From Malacoraja senta (lineage: Eukaryota), in assembly GCA_038087875.1 (NCBI GenBank), contig CM075977.1:153822001-153886000 (forward strand): 64,000 nt of DNA. The letters are read 5' to 3'. Below, piece by piece: positions 4,965 to 44,169 of this stretch (position 1 is its first letter; each line of letters starts with the position of its first letter). Below the pieces are notes generated by a model. It saw only the letters and a list, made by a program, of their open reading frames with translations. It was not told where the DNA came from and did not search any database. The translations under genes and the position numbers were made by a program.

Positions 4965-5105
4965 AGTCTTTATTATGTAGCTGTCACAGCCCTTTGGATC
5001 ATCCAAAGCAAATAATGGCTAGTGAGGTATTTTTGAATTGAAGCTACCTGTTGTAAAAGTAGAAAACACAGCAGTCAATTTGGCACAGCAAGCTTCCACA
5101 AACAA
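4965..5105 (-). mobile_element. Old Deu-domain SINE (SacSINE1/AmnSINE-like) 3' remnant
   Basis: The reverse complement resembles the DeuSINE tail (GCTTGCTGTGCCAAATTGACTGCTG...GCTTTGGATGATCC). Recognised from memory and heavily diverged. Confidence 0.45.
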
Positions 5106-5396
5106 AAGAGAAACAAGTCACAATTTCAGCAAATACTGTCCAGTAAAGTGGGCTGGAGTCTATGTTTCTGATCGGAACTATTAGATTTCAGTTGGTGAAA
5201 CTTTGGCACACACCACTGAATGCAGAAGTCCAGGACTATTGAATGCTAGATGGAGCCATATTTGTTATTCTGCCTTTCACTGGAATCCATATCATTTATT
5301 ATTGCTGAGATTATCTGGTATTAAATTGGAGAATCTCCTCTCCAACCCAACTCAAGTCAGACCTGATGCAGAATCTGACATCAGTTGGGAGTCTAA

Positions 5397-6358
5397 TGGG
5401 CCTGTCCCACTTAGGCGGATTTTTAGTCGCCACATGTTCGCGGGTGGTTGCTGGGGAGTCGCCTTCATGGTCGTGAGGAGTTCCCGCATTCTGGGAGCTA
5501 GTCACGGCCTCATTATGGTCACTGTGAATTTTTCAACATGTTGAAAAATTAGCAGCGACTAGAATGAAGTCGCCATGGAGAGTACCGAGAATTCTCGTGC
5601 CGTAGGTGGGTCGCCAGGAGGTCCTAATGGGTTGTCAGAAGGTCGAAGGTTCTCGCTGGTCCTTGTAGGTTGTAGCTGGTGCTGACCAGTGAATTTCATT
5701 GGCTCATTGGGGAAAAAAAGGTAAGCAGTAGTTTTCAGAACCAAGGATAACCGACCGGTAATGTTAAATGTCCGCCGAGCTTTTCAGCCATGTATCTCTG
5801 GTTTCTTAAAAGTTGTTTCCACTCCTTCTCCCCCCTTCTCCCCCTTCTCCCCTTCTCCCCCCTTCTCCCCCTTCTTCCCCCTCTCCCCCCCACCTCTCCC
5901 CCCCACCTCTCCCCCTTCTTTTAAAGGACTTACCGTACACTGTGCTTTAGCTCTTAAAGAAGGAACTGCAGATGCTGGAAAACCGAAGGTACACAAAAAT
6001 GCTGGAGAAACTCAGCGGGTGCAGCAGCATCTATGGAGCGAAGGAAATAGGCAACGTTTCGGGCCGAAACCCTTCTTCAGACTGTGCTTTAGCTGTCTTT
6101 TTACAGCGCCAACCTTCCTGTTCATCACGGTGTGTGTCTGTTTCACCTTGGCTTTGCACCGCGTGAATTTGTTAGACAGCACTCCCCCCGATTGTCCTAT
6201 CCCCCGCCTGCATAACGGGCTGGTGAAAGAAGCGATGTGTTTGTATGTGTGTGTTTCACTCTGACAGTTGCCGTTCCAGTTGCCGGTTTTTCAGGCGACT
6301 GCCAACAACTTGACATTCGCCAGCAGTCCGCTGAAAAATGGACTGTGGGACAGGCCCA
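5397..6358. mobile_element. PIF/Harbinger-type MITE
   Basis: TIRs TGGGCCTGTCCCAC (5397-5410) and GTGGGACAGGCCCA (6345-6358), flanked by TAA on both sides; no transposase ORF. Confidence 0.8.
5953..6080 (-). mobile_element. Penelope terminal-repeat fragment with hammerhead motif, nested in the MITE
   Basis: 14-bp TSD ACTGTGCTTTAGCT (5939-5952 and 6081-6094); the minus strand reads CTGAAGAAGGGTTTCGGCCCGAAACGTT. Confidence 0.8.
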
Positions 6359-6596
6359 TAAGCCTATCAATATGATCTTTGTTGAAAATTAAATTTTTGG
6401 GGTTAAGTTTTTCAATAATATCCAAGTGTGCTTCATTTTTTAAATATTTTTTAACATTTTCTCATTCTTAATTTACCTCATGTTTACTGATTGTTTGAGA
6501 CATAAAAACTGCTAATTCACTGTCAGCAAAACACAAAGTACTGGAGTAACTCTGGGCCCTACCATTCCCTCCACAGTTGCTGCCTGGGGTCTGAGT

Positions 6597-6905
6597 TTTT
6601 AGTTTAGTGTTTATTTTAGGGATACAGCATTAAACCTGGCCCTTCGGCCGACCGATTCCACACCCGCCATCAATCACCCCTACACTGTTATCCCACTTTT
6701 GCATCCTACAAACTAGAGGCAATTTACTGAAGCCATTAACCTACAAACCTACATCTTTTAACGTGGGAGGAAACCAGAGCACCCGGAGAATGCCCACACG
6801 GTCACAGCGAGAATGTACAAGCTCTGTGCAGGCAACACCCGTGGTCAGGATCGAAGGTGCTGTGAGGCAGTGGCTCTACCACTGCAACACCGTGCTGCCA
6901 TGCCA
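6597..6905 (-). mobile_element. HE1-like tRNA-derived V-SINE
   Basis: Reverse complement has the V-domain (TTCTCCGGGTGCTCTGGTTTCCTCCCAC), a CR1-like tail (GGCCGAAGGGCC) and a TAAAC-type terminus. Confidence 0.8.
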
Positions 6906-7028
6906 CCATGTGAGTTACTCCAGAAGTTTGTGTTTTGCTCAAGATTCCAGCATCTACAGTTCCTTATGTCCCGAATTCACTGTCAACTTTGACATAAAGC
7001 TAACCCTGCCCTTAGCTTTAAAGCTAAC

Positions 7029-7170
7029 AGAATCAAGGGATATGGGGAGAAAGCAGGAACGGGGTACTGATTTTGGATGATCAGCCATAATCATATTGAA
7101 TGGGGGTGCTAGCTCAAAGGGCCGAATGGCCTACTCCTGCACCTCTTTTCTATGTCTATGTTTCTATGTT
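7029..7170 (+). mobile_element. CR1 3' end fragment
   Basis: GAATCAAGGGATATGGGG...GGCCGAATGGCCTACTCCTGCACC followed by (TTTCTATG)n. Confidence 0.8.
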
Positions 7171-9047
7171 TATCTGTCAAAGCTTGAGGTCAGTCACCAT
7201 TTAGACCTTGCTGTCTAATTCAGTGATCCAGAGGATTTGGTCTCCGTGTGCAGTCTACCTTGGTGGAGGTGAGCAAAAACGGTGGGATGGATCCAACAAA
7301 ATCTGGCTCAATATTTGAGAGGTGGTTTCGTTCAAGGAGCATGGGAACAATACTTCTTGGATCTCTTGCTAAGTCAGGTACCTCTCTAATTTGGAACTAT
7401 ATCGGTGTTCCTTCATTGTGACTGGGTATAAATACTGGAACTCACAGTCCAGCAACAGTGTTTGGGAATACCTTCACTCAAAGGACAGTAGAAAATGGCT
7501 CATCACCAATTTCCCTGAGGCTATTTGGGATGCTGGTTGGCTCACGATTCTTGCATTCCAGAAAAACAAATTTAAACTAAGGTGCAGACAGATACTCATT
7601 AGAGGGAAAGGAAATGCAAAAAAAATTAAAGCTCCCCGTTCGACGAAAAGCAGAGGCTAAAGTTAAAATGATAAAGGAAAGTTACGGTGATTCAGTGGAG
7701 AACCAAGCGGAAAATAAAAGCTACAAGGACAGCTGAAAGAAGAAATTAAATGATAATTAAAATCAAGACACAGCAAAAACTGGTAATATTTAGCAGGTCA
7801 GGCAGAATCTATAGAGTAAAATAAAATGCTTTCATATTGATGATCTTCTGTTAGCTTTAATGAAAAATGATTATTGTGAAATCTAACTCATTTTCAACCT
7901 TGATTGATGCTGCTTAATCTCTTGAATATTTTTAGAGTTTCCTTTTTCATTCTCAGATTTCTACCATCCACCGTATACACTATATCCTTTCTTTCGAATT
8001 AAATCAGATCAGTAGCTAATGCTGAAAGGAAATCAAATGTCCTTTATCAATATAGGAACTGTGAAAGAGCAGTTAAACATGATGCTATTGGGGACCAAGA
8101 AGCATGTGCAATGGAAGAAGGGATTCTGCAGAGATAATAAATTACTACCGGTAACCTGAATTGGAAACAACAAACGAGAGGATGCTCTCCAGTAAATGAC
8201 AAGGTTGGAAAGAGAGTATTTACATATAAACTGGAGTGTGAAATTAAAATGGATGTCAGCGGAAAAAGTGGAAAAGACATCAGGCAGAATAGAGTGCATC
8301 TTCTTTGGCTGAGGGAAGTAATCCAGAAGCTCTGGTCAAAATTTCTAATTCATCTTCAAAATAAGAGCAGTGCTAGTACGCTGGAGTACCTCAAACGATA
8401 CACCAAAGGAGGGAAATGTGAGTCTAGCAATTGTAGACCAATGCACCCATTGTCAACAATGGGGATTGGTTTCGAGACAAAGGTACTGGAAAAAAAAGAC
8501 TTGCTGGAAAATACGGATTAATTGATGAAAATGTAGTCATTTTTTTCTAAAAGACTAGAGTGCTTGTTAAAATTAAGTCCAAATAAAACTACTTGACTAA
8601 TTTCAAGGATGAAGTAATGGTTGATACAGATTGACATGTTCATGCCATTTGATAAAGACTTCTGAAGACAATGGAATAAAAGGGACAGTACCTGGACGGA
8701 AACAAGTTGGCTAAAGGATAGAACGAGCAAATTCTGACACTTGAAGGTGCAGAGATGACTTATCAAAAAAAAATCCAGAGATGAGAAACTTACATTTTGT
8801 AAGATGCACTGAGAAACTGGAATTGTGCTCCTTAGAGTCAGAGGATTATGGGGAAATTAAAAAAAGATGTTGACATTTATGTGAGGTTTTGATTTGAGTG
8901 GAAAAAGAGTTTTCATTGGCAGGAAGAGTGGTAACCAGATGAAGCTGTTTTAACATGATTGACTAAAGAAAAATTCTATTTATGCAACAGATTTTTACGG
9001 CATGGAATGATCTGCGGTGGAGGAAATTCAATGATAACTTTCAGAAA

Positions 9048-9580
9048 TTTGAGAAAGGACATCCTTGCTATTGAGGCAGTGCAGCGTAACTTCACGAGGT
9101 TAATCCCCGGGATGGCGGGACTGTCATATGAGGAAAGATTGGAAAGACTGGGCTTGCATTCACTGGAATTTAGAAGGATGAGAGGGAATCTTATAGAAAC
9201 GTATAAAATTATAAAAAGGACTGGACAAGTTAGATGCAGGAAAAATGTTACCAATGTTGGGCGAGTCCAGAACCAGGGGGCACAGTCTACGAATAAAGGG
9301 GAGGCCATTTAAAACTGAGATGAGAAAAAACGTTTTCACCCAGAGAGTTGTGAATTTGTAGAATTCTCTGCCACAGAAGGCGGTAGAGGCCAACACTGGA
9401 TGAATTTAAAAGAGAGTTAGAGCTCTAGGGACTAGTGGAATCAAGGGATATGGGGAGAAGGCAGGCCCGGGTTACTGATTGTGGATGATCAGCCATGATC
9501 ACAATGAATGGCGGTGCAGCTCGAGGGGCCAAATGGCCTCCTCCTGCACCTATTTTCTATGTTTCTATGTTTCTATGTTT
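9048..9580 (+). mobile_element. CR1 3' fragment (5'-truncated)
   Basis: LRKDILAIEAVQR...LSYEERLERLGL...RRMRGNLIETYK and a (TTTCTATG)n tail. Confidence 0.9.
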
Positions 9581-37400: not shown

Positions 37401-38780
37401 TTTAAATGCCTTCTTCAAACTCTGTATTGATTTGTCATCACCTTCTGGGAACTACAGTATGTATTTTTACCCCAAGCTCTCATTGCCAATACTAAGTCTG
37501 CCGATAATGCTCTCCAGGGCCCTGTCATTCGCTAGGTATATCCTAGCATAGTATAAATAGCCAAAATGCATCACTTCACACTTGCCTTTATTGCCAGAAT
37601 TGGACTGGCCTCATTTCTTGAAGATGGTCATGATAATAGCCAGCAATTGCGTCTGTGCTCACCTTCATTGGTGAGCATTAGCACATGCTGTGGAGACTGG
37701 TCTCTAGTTCTCTTGGTCCCTACTTTCAATTGATCAAGAGTCCATGTACTAAACGACAAACAAATCTTTCTTTAATCAGCAAGGAGGTTAGCGTAGAAAT
37801 AAACCTGGTTTGTATGTCTCTATTCAAATTTCTTATCTTGAGCATTTTGGTTTACTCCAAGCCTGCTGATACATCCAATCGAGAGTCAAGAGTGTTTTAT
37901 TGTCATATATACTCGAACAGAACAATGTGATTCTTACTAGTAACAACAGTAAGTTTAGTAAACGCAGTACTCAATAAATAATATAAGAAACAATTTTAAA
38001 AATTCAATAAATAAATAACCCAAGTTAGTGCAAAAAACACAACATGCCCTAAGTCTCTAGTGCAACCCAGGCTGTTCGTAGTTCAGAATTTATTTGGAGT
38101 TTGTAGTGTTCAATAGCTTGATGGTTGAGCTAAGTTTACATAGTCTGTTTACATATTCTATTGTGCTGCAGCAAGTAAGAATTTCATTGTTCTATCTGGG
38201 ACATATGACAATAAAACACCCTTGACTCTGGACTCTTGGTTGTTGGGAAGAAGCCGTTCCTGAACCTGATCGTTACACTTCTCAGACTCCTATACCTTCT
38301 TCCCGATGGCAGGAGTGAAACGAGATTGTGGGCAGAGTGGTGTGGGTCCTTGGTGATGCTGGTTGGTTTCTTGAGACAGCGCTTCTTATTGATCTCTTCA
38401 CTGGTGGAGAGGTCAGCACCCACCATGCACCAGGCAGTATTCATCACTTTTTGAAATCTCCTTAGTTTTTGATCATTTGAGTTGCCAAACCAGGCTGTGA
38501 TGCAACTAGTCAATATGCTCTCTGTGATACACCTGTAGAAGTTCAAGAGAGTATCCATCGACATACCAAATCTCATCAGTCTTTGAAAGAAGTAAAGCGG
38601 TTGGTGTGCTTTCTCTATGATTGCATCAATGTGCTGGGTCCAGGAGAGATCTTCAAAGATATGCACACCCAAGAATTTAAGGTTGTTGACTGTCTCCACC
38701 ACTGACCTGTTGATGAATATAGGTTTGGGAAGGGCCTTTTCTAAAATCATCAATCATTTACATGATTTTACTGCTGTTCA

Positions 38781-38853
38781 GGGGATCAAGGTAGAAGCGT
38801 TCACGTCGCGATGCCTGTCAAGTAATATCACCAAATTACTTGCGAATTCTACC
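38781..38853 (+). ncRNA. HDV-like (CPEB3-type) self-cleaving ribozyme fold at the Vingi 5' end
   Basis: P1 GGGGAUC/GAUGCCU (G1-U wobble, one G-G mismatch), P2 GGUAGAA/UUCUACC, P3 GCG/CGC, L3 UUCACGU, J1.1 GU, P4 CAAGUAAU/AUUACUUG, J4/2 CGAA (putative catalytic C38843). Confidence 0.9.
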
Positions 38854-38882
38854 AAACACTTTGAAGCCAAGCCGAAAGACAA

Positions 38883-41800
38883 ATGATGTCCAGAAGCCCA
38901 ACAAATGGCAGTAGCCCATCAGCCCGGAACAGGAAGAGAGGCCAACACCAGCCCCCAAGGCCGGCTTTGACCATCATATCTCTAAATGGTGAAGGACTGT
39001 CTGCAACTAAAGAAGAACTTGTTGCCCAACTCTGCAGAGAGCATCAGTGTGATATTCTCTGCCTTCAAGAAACTCACTGCGGACCCAAACATCCCCGCCC
39101 TCGAGTGGAAGGCATGACCACCCTCATTGAAAGACCACATGAGAAACATGGAAGCGTCATGCTTGCAAAAAACGGGACAATCATCGAATCAACATCAAAG
39201 AGCGATGAAAACAACATTGAGGTCCTAACCGCTGAGCTCAGAGGAATTACCATCACCTCCGTCTACAAGCCACCTCCCACACCTTTCCTGATGCCAGAAA
39301 TACCATCATCTGGGAAACCAAGGATAGTGATTGGAGACTTCAACAGCCACAGCTCACAATGGGGTTACACCGGAAACAACGCTGATGGAGATGCAGTGCA
39401 AGCATGGGCCGAAACTAACCAGCTCTACCTGATCCATGATGCCAAACAACCAAAGTCCTTTAATAGCGGGTGATGGAAAGCCGGCTACAACCCTGATATC
39501 GCGTTTGTCAGCCATAGCATCTCTGGATTGGGCAAGAAGCTGGTACTGAAGCCACTGCCAAAAACCCAACACCGCCCCATTGGCCTTACAGTCAATGCTG
39601 CAGTTACCCCAGCCACAGTTCCTTTCCAGAGAAGATTCAACTTTGGGAAAGCGAACTGGCCTGGTTTCCAAGAAGATCTTGAAGGGAAGATCGCCCACCT
39701 TCCAGCGGACCCCAAAAACTATCAAATCTTCACCAAGTTAGTGCACCAGGCAGCTCGGAAGAACATCCCAAGAGGCTGCCGCACTCAATACATCCCCGGC
39801 CTTGACACTCCAAGCAGTGAACTATATGAGGAATACCAACAGCTCTACGAATCTGACCCCTTTGCTGAAAGCACCATGGAAGTAGGTGAGAGACTCATGA
39901 CCTCCCTATCAGAATGCCGCCAGCGGAAATGGCAAACTCTACTGGAGACAACTGATATGGCAAAAAACAGCAAAAAGGCATGGAGCCTCATCTGAAAAAT
40001 CAGCAATGACCCATCAACACCAACACATCAACAGTATACCACCACGGCCAACCAAGTTGCGTATCAGTTGCTGCTCAACGGGAAATCCACCACCAAACAG
40101 CCAAGACCAAAGGCAGACCGACTTCAGCACTCCCAAAACATCGGACTGACTGAGCCGTTCTCCCTTGAAGAGCTCAATATCAGCATCAAAGCCCTCAAGA
40201 CTGGCAAAGCCATCGGCCTGGACAATATTTTCACAGAGATCAAGCAGTTTGGACCTCTGACACGGAAGTGGGTCCTTGAGCTGATGAACAACTGCATGCT
40301 GACAAGAAACATCCCAAAGATCTGGAGGAAAACCAAAATCATCGCTCTTCTAAAACCCGGTAAAAATCCAGCATATGCAAAGAGCTTCCGCCCAATCTCC
40401 CTGCTATGCCACCCGTACAAGCTGTTTGAGCGCCTGATCCTCAACAGGCTTGCCCCAGTCATTGAACCAGCCATCATCCCTCAACAAGCTGGATTCCGAC
40501 CTGGCAAATCCACAACAAGTCAACTTCTGAATCTCACACAGCACATTGAAGACGGGTTCCAGAAAGGACTGGTGACAGGAGCCATCTTTGTTGATATGTC
40601 TGCCGCGTATGACACTGTGAACCACCGCCTCCTCCAAAAAAAGATCATGGAGAATACCAAAGACCTGGCACTCACGGACCTCATCGGAGCCCTCCTGAAA
40701 GATAGGCGCTTCTATGTTGTCCTTAACAACAAGCAAAGTTGCTGGCGACGACAACGGAATGGCTTGCCTCAAGGTAGTGTGCTGGCTCCACTACTATATA
40801 ACATCTACACCAATGACCAGCCAATGGACCAGAACACTGAGCGGTTCATCTACGCCGACGACCTCTGGGTAACATCCCAAGAGAGTACGTTTGAAGCTGT
40901 AGAAGCGAATCTCACCTCAGCCCTAGATGAGCTACACCTCTACTATGAGTGCAACCACCTACACGCAAACCCTGCGAAGACCCAAGCCTGCTCGTTCCAT
41001 CTCAGGAACCGGGAAGCAAACAGACCCCTTAACATCACATGGTCTGGAACACCTCTTGAGCACTGCACCAACCCTGTCTACCTCGGTGTAACACTGGATC
41101 GTACTCTCTCCTATAAGGAACACGTCAAAAACACCAAACTGAGAGTAAACTCTCGGAATAACATTCTCCGGAAGCTGACCAACTCCAAATGGGGAGCCAC
41201 AGCTCACACATTAAGATCTACTGCTCTGGCCCTGTGCTACTCCTCTGCGGAGTATGCGTGTCCTGTTTGGGAGCGATCATCCCATGCCAAGAAACTAGAC
41301 CCAGCGTTGAATAACACCTGCCGCTCAATCACTGGCTGCTTGAAGCCCACCAACATAAACAACCTGCATCTCCTCGCTGGCATTGCCCCTGCTGATGTGA
41401 GACGGAACGTCGCCAGCCGAGTAGAGATGACCAAGGCCACCAATGATGAACGCCACCTCCTCTACGGACGTGTACCCCCGGCCCAACGGCTGAAGTCCAG
41501 GAGAAGCTTTCTCAGCCATGTCCAGCCCCTAATAGCATCACGGGAAGAAACCAGACTCCAACTATGGACAAAAAGGCTTGAGGACGACCCCCCTCCTACT
41601 GACATGGGTATCCCTCCTTCTGAAGCCCTCCCTCCGGGCTCAGAAGCACCATGGGTCCAGTGGAAGACGCTCAACCGCCTGAGAACAGGAACAGGGCGAT
41701 CAAAAGATGCCATGGCCAGATGGGGCTATGAAACTGGCCAAACCACCTGTGAATGTGGAGAAGAGGACCACACAATGCAGCACTGCCTTGTCTGCCCCCT

Positions 41801-41888
41801 ACTACCCAACCAGTGCAGCTCAAAGGATCTTGCAGTGTTCAATAAAAACACAAAGGACTGTGTAAAGGAATGGGAAACTGTCATATAG
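38883..41888 (+). pseudogene. Vingi ORF (APE endonuclease, RT, C-terminal CCHC), about 1000 codons with two premature TGA stops
   Basis: ORFs starting at 38883, 39528 and 40068 are all in the same frame. Motifs: CLQETH, VYKPP, IGDFN, QAGFRPGKST, GLPQGSVLAP, IYADD, YLGVTLD, CECG..TMQH..C. Stops at 39471-39473 and 39993-39995 are probably CGA>TGA changes. Confidence 0.9.
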
Positions 41889-41960
41889 CCAACCAGCTTC
41901 AAAGACACGAAAAGAAGAAGACTGATGTTCAAGGCAAGGTTGTTGTTCTGACACCATTCA

Positions 41961-42865
41961 TAGAGTCAAAGTATAATACAGTGTGGAAACAGGCCCTTCG
42001 GCCCAAATTGCCCACACAGGCCAACATGTCCCAGCTATACTAGTCCCATCTGCCAGCATTTGGCCAAATACCCCTCCAAACCTGTCCTATATATGTACTT
42101 GTCCAACTGTTTCTTAAATATTGGGATAGTCCCAGCCTCAACTACCTCCTCAGGCAGCTTGCTCCATACATCCACCACCTTTTGTGTGAAAAGGTGACCC
42201 CCATCTACTCTGGGCAAGAGACTCTGTGCATCTACCCGATCTATTCCTCTCATGATCTTATACACCTCTATAAGATCACCCCTCATCCTCCTGCGCTCTA
42301 TTGAATAGAGTCCCAGCCTACTCAACCTCTGCCTGTAGCTCAGACCCTCTAGTCCTGGTAACATTCTCGTAAATCTTCTTTGTACCCTTTCCAGCTTAAC
42401 AACATCTTTCCTATACACGTGGTGCCAAGAACTGAACACAATACTTGTGTGGCTTCACCAGCGTCTTATACAACTGCAACATGACCTCCCAACTTCTATA
42501 CTCAATACTCTGGCTGATGAAGACCAATGTACCAAAAGCCTTTTTGACTACCTGGTCTACCTGTGATTCCACCTTCATGGAATCATGCACCTGCACTCCC
42601 AGATCCCTCTGCTCGACAACACTACTCAGAGCCCTACCATTCACTGTGTAAGTCCTGCCCATGTTAGACTTCCCAAAATGCACACCTCACATTTTTCTGC
42701 ATTAAATTCCATCAACCATTCCTCAGCCCACTTGGCCAATTGATCAAGATCCTGCTACAATTTTTCATGACCATCTTTATGATCTGCAAAACCACCCAGT
42801 TTTGTATCATCTGCAAAGTTGCTAATCGTACCGTGTATGTTCTCATCCAAATCATTGATATAGAT
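41961..42865 (-). mobile_element. CR1 3' fragment
   Basis: EQRDLGVQVH and LERVQRRFTRMLPGL..LSYRQRL motifs. Confidence 0.9.
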
Positions 42866-43415: not shown

Positions 43416-43469
43416 GGGGTGGAAGATTGCAACCTTCACGTGGTCCGCCCTGTTTCGACGAATGCAATC
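43416..43469 (+). ncRNA. Minimal (P4-less) HDV-like ribozyme fold, 54 nt
   Basis: P1 GGGGUGG/CCGCCCU, P2 GAUUGCA/UGCAAUC, P3 ACC/GGU, L3 UUCACGU, GU, a UUCGA stub and CGAA (putative catalytic C43459). All stems pair fully (Watson-Crick or G-U). Confidence 0.9.
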
Positions 43470-43553
43470 AACCTGGCGTGCACAATCAAATAAGATCAAA
43501 TAGAACAAGTTGTCCTGCAACTTTAGGCTGTGCACGCCATACGCAAGAAGAAG
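43416..43553 (+). mobile_element. 138-bp ribozyme-headed SINE with a Vingi-like 3' tail
   Basis: 12-bp TSD AAGACATGCAGT (43404-43415 and 43554-43565), 5' ribozyme fold, 11-bp inverted repeat (43474-43484 / 43529-43539) and tail ACGCAAGAAGAAG. Confidence 0.88.
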
Positions 43554-44169
43554 AAGACATGCAGTTAATGCAGTGATTTGAACAGAGAGCTGAGGTGGAC
43601 AAGTTTAAGGTAATACCAATGTTATTGCTGGATTGGATACTTGTATGGTCACCAATGTTGGGAGAAATGAAGTTGGGAAAAAGATTTAAAAAATTCTTAA
43701 TAAAACGTAGAGACTATACTGAAGATACGGCAAAATTAAACTCAATAAAAGCTTCAGTTGAAACAATAATTTTCTTGTCGTGGTACTCATACAATATAGT
43801 GAAGATCTATGGAATGCCTGAGGCAGTTTGATTGGCAGTTATAGACATTGTTGCCATTGTGTATAAGATTTATATACACTTAACTTATTTGTACAGATAG
43901 AGAAAGCATTCTTTTGTGGTTCGCAGCATGTACAGTATCTGACATTATGCTGAATTATTTTCCATCCAGGTTTTGTAAGTAAGGAGTGATTAAATCATAG
44001 TTGAATTCCATGCATCTCTATAAATATTAAATGTTATTGAGGGGAGTGAAATGTAGTAGGCTCCGGGCACTTATTCGCCTCTTTTGTTAGAACAATACCT
44101 TTCTGAGCACACTTGTCTCTCTCAAAAAGACAAGCAGCATCATAGTAATTAATAAATGGAACTGAAAAA

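Follow-up and report, generated by a model that had tools for sequence, protein, structure and literature searches.

A predicted CPEB3-type ribozyme at the 5' end of a LINE retrotransposon

Organization of the element and its insertion site

A stretch of 64,000 nt from Malacoraja senta (GCA_038087875.1, contig CM075977.1, positions 153,822,001 to 153,886,000), hereafter called the window, contains a 3,140-bp LINE with a single open reading frame at positions 38781-41920 (+). The first 73 nt of the element (38781-38853, +) match the self-cleaving CPEB3 ribozyme, which has so far been known only from one mammalian gene. A spacer of 29 nt (38854-38882) separates this region from the start codon and forms the rest of a 5' UTR of 102 nt, leaving no room for an ORF1. 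The open reading frame (38883-41888, +) corresponds to 1001 codons in one frame, interrupted by two in-frame stop codons at 39471-73 and 39993-95. APE endonuclease (PFAM family domains Exo_endo_phos and Exo_endo_phos_2) and reverse transcriptase (RVT_1) domains were identified, whereas no RNase H domain was found at E<=0.01. The predicted protein also has a conserved C-terminal Cys/His motif, LNRLRTG..C.CG..QT..H.L.CP. The only matches among PDB structures were the distant L1 ORF2p and R2. The 3' UTR of 32 nt (41889-41920) ends in ..CACGAAAAGAAGAAG, an ACGA + (AAG)n tail.

The element is flanked by an 11-bp target-site duplication, ACTGCTGTTCA (38770-38780) and ACTGATGTTCA (41921-41931), the copies of which are identical at 10 of 11 positions and of which the left one directly abuts G38781. 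Joining the flanks with one copy of the duplication removed restored a continuous minus-strand reading frame (..WCQNNNLALNSSK..MIDDFRKG..) of an older LINE of the L2/CR1 type, showing that the duplication is real. The insertion lies in the reverse transcriptase-coding part of this older and very abundant LINE, which had a word depth of 5,000-9,500 in one run of public contigs (X1). The minus-strand segments 38184-38780, 41932-~41950 and 42035-42683 comprise the older LINE and the 3' end of another CR1-like element, the latter immediately beyond the right-hand duplication.

A related non-autonomous mini-element of 139 bp was found at 43416-43554 (+), flanked by a perfect AGACATGCAGT duplication. 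It consists of an HDV-like ribozyme fold without P4 (43416-43469, L3 UUCACGU, J4/2 CGAA) joined to an ..ACGCAAGAAGAAGAAG tail like that of the LINE (a matching ACG.AAGAAGAAG tail). Only a weak Rfam hit was obtained for it (HDV-F-prausnitzii, 14 bits). L3 and J4/2 are the same as in the LINE, but all three stems differ from those of the LINE ribozyme yet remain paired, so the mini-element probably derives from, and is probably mobilised in trans by, a sister family rather than this LINE.

Predicted structure of the 5' terminal ribozyme

The helices of a nested double pseudoknot (HDV fold), which had been proposed in a preliminary description made from the sequence alone, were all present at positions 38781-38853. 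P1 pairs 38781-87 (GGGGAUC) with 38810-16 (GAUGCCU), with 6 of 7 pairs formed, including a G38781.U38816 wobble at the predicted cleavage site, and one G38784-G38813 mismatch. J1/2 is AA, and P2 pairs 38790-96 with 38847-53 (7/7). P3 (GCG/CGC, 38797-99 with 38807-09) closes the 7-nt loop L3 (UUCACGU, 38800-06). J1/4 is GU, P4 pairs 38819-26 with 38835-42 (8/8) and J4/2 is CGAA (38843-46), with C38843 at the catalytic-C position.

A gathering-threshold Rfam scan of the whole window returned a single hit, RF00622 (CPEB3_ribozyme), matching 38770-38853 (+) over the full-length model (1-78) at 57.1 bits against a cut-off of 35 (E 7.6e-13 for the whole window, 3e-15 locally). No other Rfam family matched this region in a permissive local scan, even at E<=10. 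The cleavage site in the model alignment falls 5' of G38781, and J1/4 and J4/2 are identical to the corresponding consensus columns. Three sequence blocks mentioned in the preliminary description as being shared with the mammalian ribozyme (AGAAGCGUUCACGUCGC, CCUGUCA and UGCGAAUUCU) are likewise identical to the Rfam consensus.

A structural descriptor based on P1, P2, P3, L3 and C.AA found two hits in the window, this region and 43416-43469, and none in 60 Markov-simulated windows. The minimum-free-energy structure without pseudoknots was unremarkable (z = -1.1), but such folding is uninformative for this fold. A chance match without any functional RNA is very unlikely and in practice refuted by the covariance-model score, by the absence of descriptor hits in the simulated windows and by the recurrence of the motif at the same position in independent LINE families.

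The 5' end of the family

Public contigs were aligned to positions 38631-39080. Word depth in run X1 was 0-2 just upstream of the element and 90-156 from 38781 onward, with contigs starting at 38781, 38783 and 38784. In a run labelled with a different organism (X26), two contigs left the window at 38781 and 38784 into unlike flanks. The family's 5' ends thus do not extend upstream of G38781 (G1). The possibility that the match is the host's own CPEB3-intron orthologue was rejected, since the region is multicopy, flanked by a target-site duplication and followed by a LINE reading frame; it is therefore a relative of the CPEB3 ribozyme at the sequence level and not an orthologue.

G38813 was C in 84.5 of 101.4 depth units in run X1 and in all contigs of X26 and of a further run (X25), which restores the fourth P1 pair and gives a perfect P1 of 7 bp. 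The P1 mismatch is thus a lesion of this copy, which is dead, carrying also the two stop codons, and the functional unit is the family rather than this locus. No RNA evidence of cleavage was obtained: in the one raw-read RNA run examined (X24, polyA, from a related organism) only 8 reads aligned, all to the unrelated upstream repeat, and RNA-labelled contigs of X26 carried upstream flank sequence, indicating either uncleaved RNA or DNA carry-over.

Ribozymes in related LINEs

The reverse transcriptase part of the protein has more than 1,150 homologues at 50-85 % identity, including annotated proteins of sea urchin, amphioxus, aphid, psyllid, moths and Anolis at 50-58 % identity (Anolis 52 %). 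DNA of thirteen related loci was examined. Four further loci from three related LINE families (60-65 % protein identity) carry CPEB3-type ribozymes at the 5' end. The first of these, L001 (65 % protein identity), scored 54.7 bits with RF00622; its 7-bp P1 starts one base after the flank and its tail is ..ACGATAGAAGAAGAAG. In the second, L128 (61 %), the ribozyme spans positions 49-251 and has an insert of approximately 155 nt in the P4 loop (86-236), built from repeats of an agattgtagta-like unit, so that only the 5' half was scored (34.9 bits, just below the cut-off). L129 and L130 (60 %), two marine-metagenome copies of one element, have a version without P4, scoring 35.7 and 41.0 bits, and their flanks diverge exactly 5' of GGGGUC. 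P4 is therefore a freely expandable peripheral domain in this lineage.

A decayed version (18 bits) was found in a locus from the teleost Pogonophryne albipinna (L132), in which a 9-bp duplication, TTTACAAAT, is flush with G1 and with the tail. The terminal ACGA + (AAG)n motif of the window element also occurs in L001, L128, L129/L130 and L132, and in the mini-element. More distant members, an aphid locus (L006, 30.2 bits) and the loci L002 and L003, have clear HDV-like folds in the same place with different stems, so that a ribozyme is found at this position in relatives at 53-65 % protein identity. However, no ribozyme was seen upstream of the amphioxus locus (L005) or of L007, the sea urchin copy (L004) is decayed, and the contig closest to the Anolis protein (L131) begins inside the motif.

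Among the 7 LINE-associated ribozymes compared, 14 of the 17 P1/P2/P3 pairs varied while remaining paired, with one non-pair, although this count is partly circular, since the descriptor with which the distant ribozymes were found demands pairing. The covariation was counted from the descriptor parses and no covariance model was built, because MAFFT alignments misaligned the 3' halves as a result of the long P4 inserts and of P1 being 6 bp in some sequences and 7 bp in others.

In a maximum-likelihood protein tree the families with CPEB3-type ribozymes (the window element, L001, L128 and L129/L130 with Pogonophryne) grouped together with 86/90 support, whereas Anolis, L131 and the insect elements formed the other branch. 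The nearest named relative of L129/L130 is a teleost fish LINE.

Comparison with the mammalian CPEB3 ribozyme

The window ribozyme and the mammalian CPEB3 ribozyme (RF00622; Salehi-Ashtiani et al. 2006) have the same double-pseudoknot fold and identical L3, P3, J1/4 and J4/2, and blocks of 18, 7 and 10 nt are also identical. P1, distal P2 and P4 carry compensatory changes. The window sequence is identical to the mammalian consensus at 48 of 62 core positions. L128 is identical at 55 of 62, including the P2 stem (GCAGAA/UUCUGC) and six base pairs of P4 (CAGAUU/AAUCUG), stems which are not fixed by the fold. The relatives outside the window support the link to mammals better than the window copy does.

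The resemblance could also reflect convergence of a small fold on a shared functional optimum. HDV-like ribozymes from a metagenome scan with the pattern AAGCGTYCNCGTCGCG served as a background set. After structural filtering only four loci were real HDV-like folds, and none of them is linked to a LINE. In L065 (1998-2051, -) and at the matching place in L066 (around 6290-6345, +) ribozymes without P4 are followed within about 30 nt by AAGGAG and ATG and look like bacterial 5'-leader ribozymes. In L071 (110-183, -; 24 bits with RF00622) a minimal ribozyme directly adjoins an array of six tRNA genes (178-1804, -), resembling the phage theta ribozymes (PMC10879173). The fourth was L080.

The P3/L3 core GCG-UYCNCGU-CGC also occurs in these unrelated ribozymes, so that part of the identical 18-nt block is shared across the class, and G1.U, the J1/4 G and C.AA are invariant class features. 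However, these ribozymes scored only 24-28 bits or nothing with RF00622 and 37-42 of 62 on the core, even though they had been pre-selected for a shared 15-nt pattern, whereas the LINE group scored 35-57 bits and 47-55 of 62. The P2 and P4-base stems shared by L128 and mammals differ in every other HDV-like ribozyme seen here, and the CPEB3-type ribozymes fall in one clade of the LINE protein tree. Convergence is therefore considered unlikely and common descent probable.

The preliminary description suggested that the mammalian intronic ribozyme may descend from a Vingi-like element, and this suggestion became stronger with the related LINEs. The opposite direction, capture of a host CPEB3-type ribozyme by a LINE, for example by template switching onto a CPEB3 pre-mRNA, is conceivable, since non-LTR elements can acquire 5' sequences in this way, but appears improbable. 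HDV-like ribozymes sit at the 5' end across the LINE group, including aphid and metagenomic lineages with diverged sequences, so that the module looks ancestral to the group, whereas the mammalian ribozyme is a single locus and was reported in 2021 as unknown outside mammals (PMC8233481). The direction of descent is thus inferred from distribution only. It is somewhat more likely than not that the mammalian ribozyme is an exapted 5' end of a LINE of this Vingi-like lineage, inserted in sense orientation into the CPEB3 intron of an early mammal, in which case the LINE-borne ribozymes, L128 being the best, would be its missing non-mammalian outgroups.

The origin of the CPEB3 ribozyme has been open since 2006, and domestication of such ribozymes from mobile elements has been suggested only in general terms (2020, PMC7761336). 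No paper linking CPEB3 to a LINE clade was found, although the literature searched was not exhaustive and prior publication cannot be excluded. The LINE clade provides a concrete candidate donor, and natural outgroups and variants for studies of ribozyme evolution.

Clade and proposed function

The element belongs to the I/Ingi-like group and is probably a member of the Vingi clade (Kojima, Kapitonov & Jurka 2011), as proposed in the preliminary description, although this rests on indirect support. The single APE and reverse transcriptase ORF, the absence of RNase H and ORF1, the length (3,140 bp compared to 3,128 bp for Vingi-2_Gav), the microsatellite tail and the Anolis relatives fit Vingi (PMC5786205, PMC13708176). 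The Cys/His tail is typical of LINEs of the I/Jockey group and argues against RTE, elements of which appear to lack it (Malik & Eickbush 1998). The human genome keeps an ancient Vingi trace, X12_LINE (PMC5753468).

HDV-like 5' ribozymes are established for R2, R1, R4, RTE, LOA and Ingi/L1Tc (PMC5786205, PMC3185411, PMC3774820), but none is listed for Vingi in the 2018 survey of LINE ribozymes (PMC5786205). If the assignment is correct, the present element would add another lineage to these. Nucleotides 2-74 of Vingi-2_Gav recur inside a SINE and Vingi forms bipartite non-autonomous elements (PMC5786205), both of which a 5' ribozyme module would explain.

In L1Tc and ingi elements an HDV-like ribozyme (L1TcRz/Pr77) similarly occupies the first ~75 nt of an APE-type LINE of the Ingi-related group and is shared with short non-autonomous derivatives, NARTc and RIME, that keep only the 5' and 3' ends (Sanchez-Luque et al. 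2011, PMC3185411; PMC4035085). The elements described here differ in having animal hosts rather than trypanosomatids, in lacking an RNase H domain and in having a ribozyme sequence of the CPEB3 type. In R2 and RTE the 5' end is released co-transcriptionally and full-length copies begin at or near the cleavage site (Eickbush & Eickbush 2010; Ruminski et al. 2011), but R2 is site-specific and uses a restriction-like endonuclease.

It is inferred that the element is transcribed from its own promoter or as part of host read-through transcripts and, by analogy with R2, RTE and L1Tc, that the ribozyme folds co-transcriptionally and cuts 5' of G38781, with C38843 as general acid, discarding upstream host RNA and leaving a structured, cap-less 5' end. 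Target-primed reverse transcription to that end would result in full-length insertions starting exactly at G1 next to the duplication, as observed at the boundaries. The anatomy of the mini-element suggests that the same 5' module joined to the 3' ACGA(AAG)n tail may be enough for mobilisation in trans. This explanation is strongly favoured, although self-cleavage remains a prediction.

Alternatively, the 5' module could act mainly as an internal promoter or as a translation or RNP-assembly element, with cleavage weak or lost. The first 77 nt of L1Tc are both promoter (Pr77) and ribozyme (PMC3383444), Vingi-1 gene-writing constructs keep the native 5' UTR (PMC13708176), for which the present finding is also relevant, and the window copy has a mismatch in P1. 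However, all catalytic-core features are kept across families that differ in every stem, the signature of selection on the ribozyme fold itself, making this alternative doubtful as the main role, although the roles are not mutually exclusive.

Interestingly, a conserved 6-bp stem with a 4-nt U-rich loop lies inside the first ~20 codons of the LINE reading frame, with compensatory stem changes between families. It was found in L001 (220-235), L128 (331-346), L129 (220-235), L130 (181-196), L002 and L003 (1544-1559), L005 (1553-1568), L006 (1526-1541) and L131 (108-123), whereas the window copy keeps only the 3' arm (~38947-38952). The Rfam histone 3' stem-loop model scored it at 32.1 bits in the aphid locus (cut-off 34) and at 22 bits in L131. 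It may be a protein-binding (SLBP-like) or translation element of this LINE clade.
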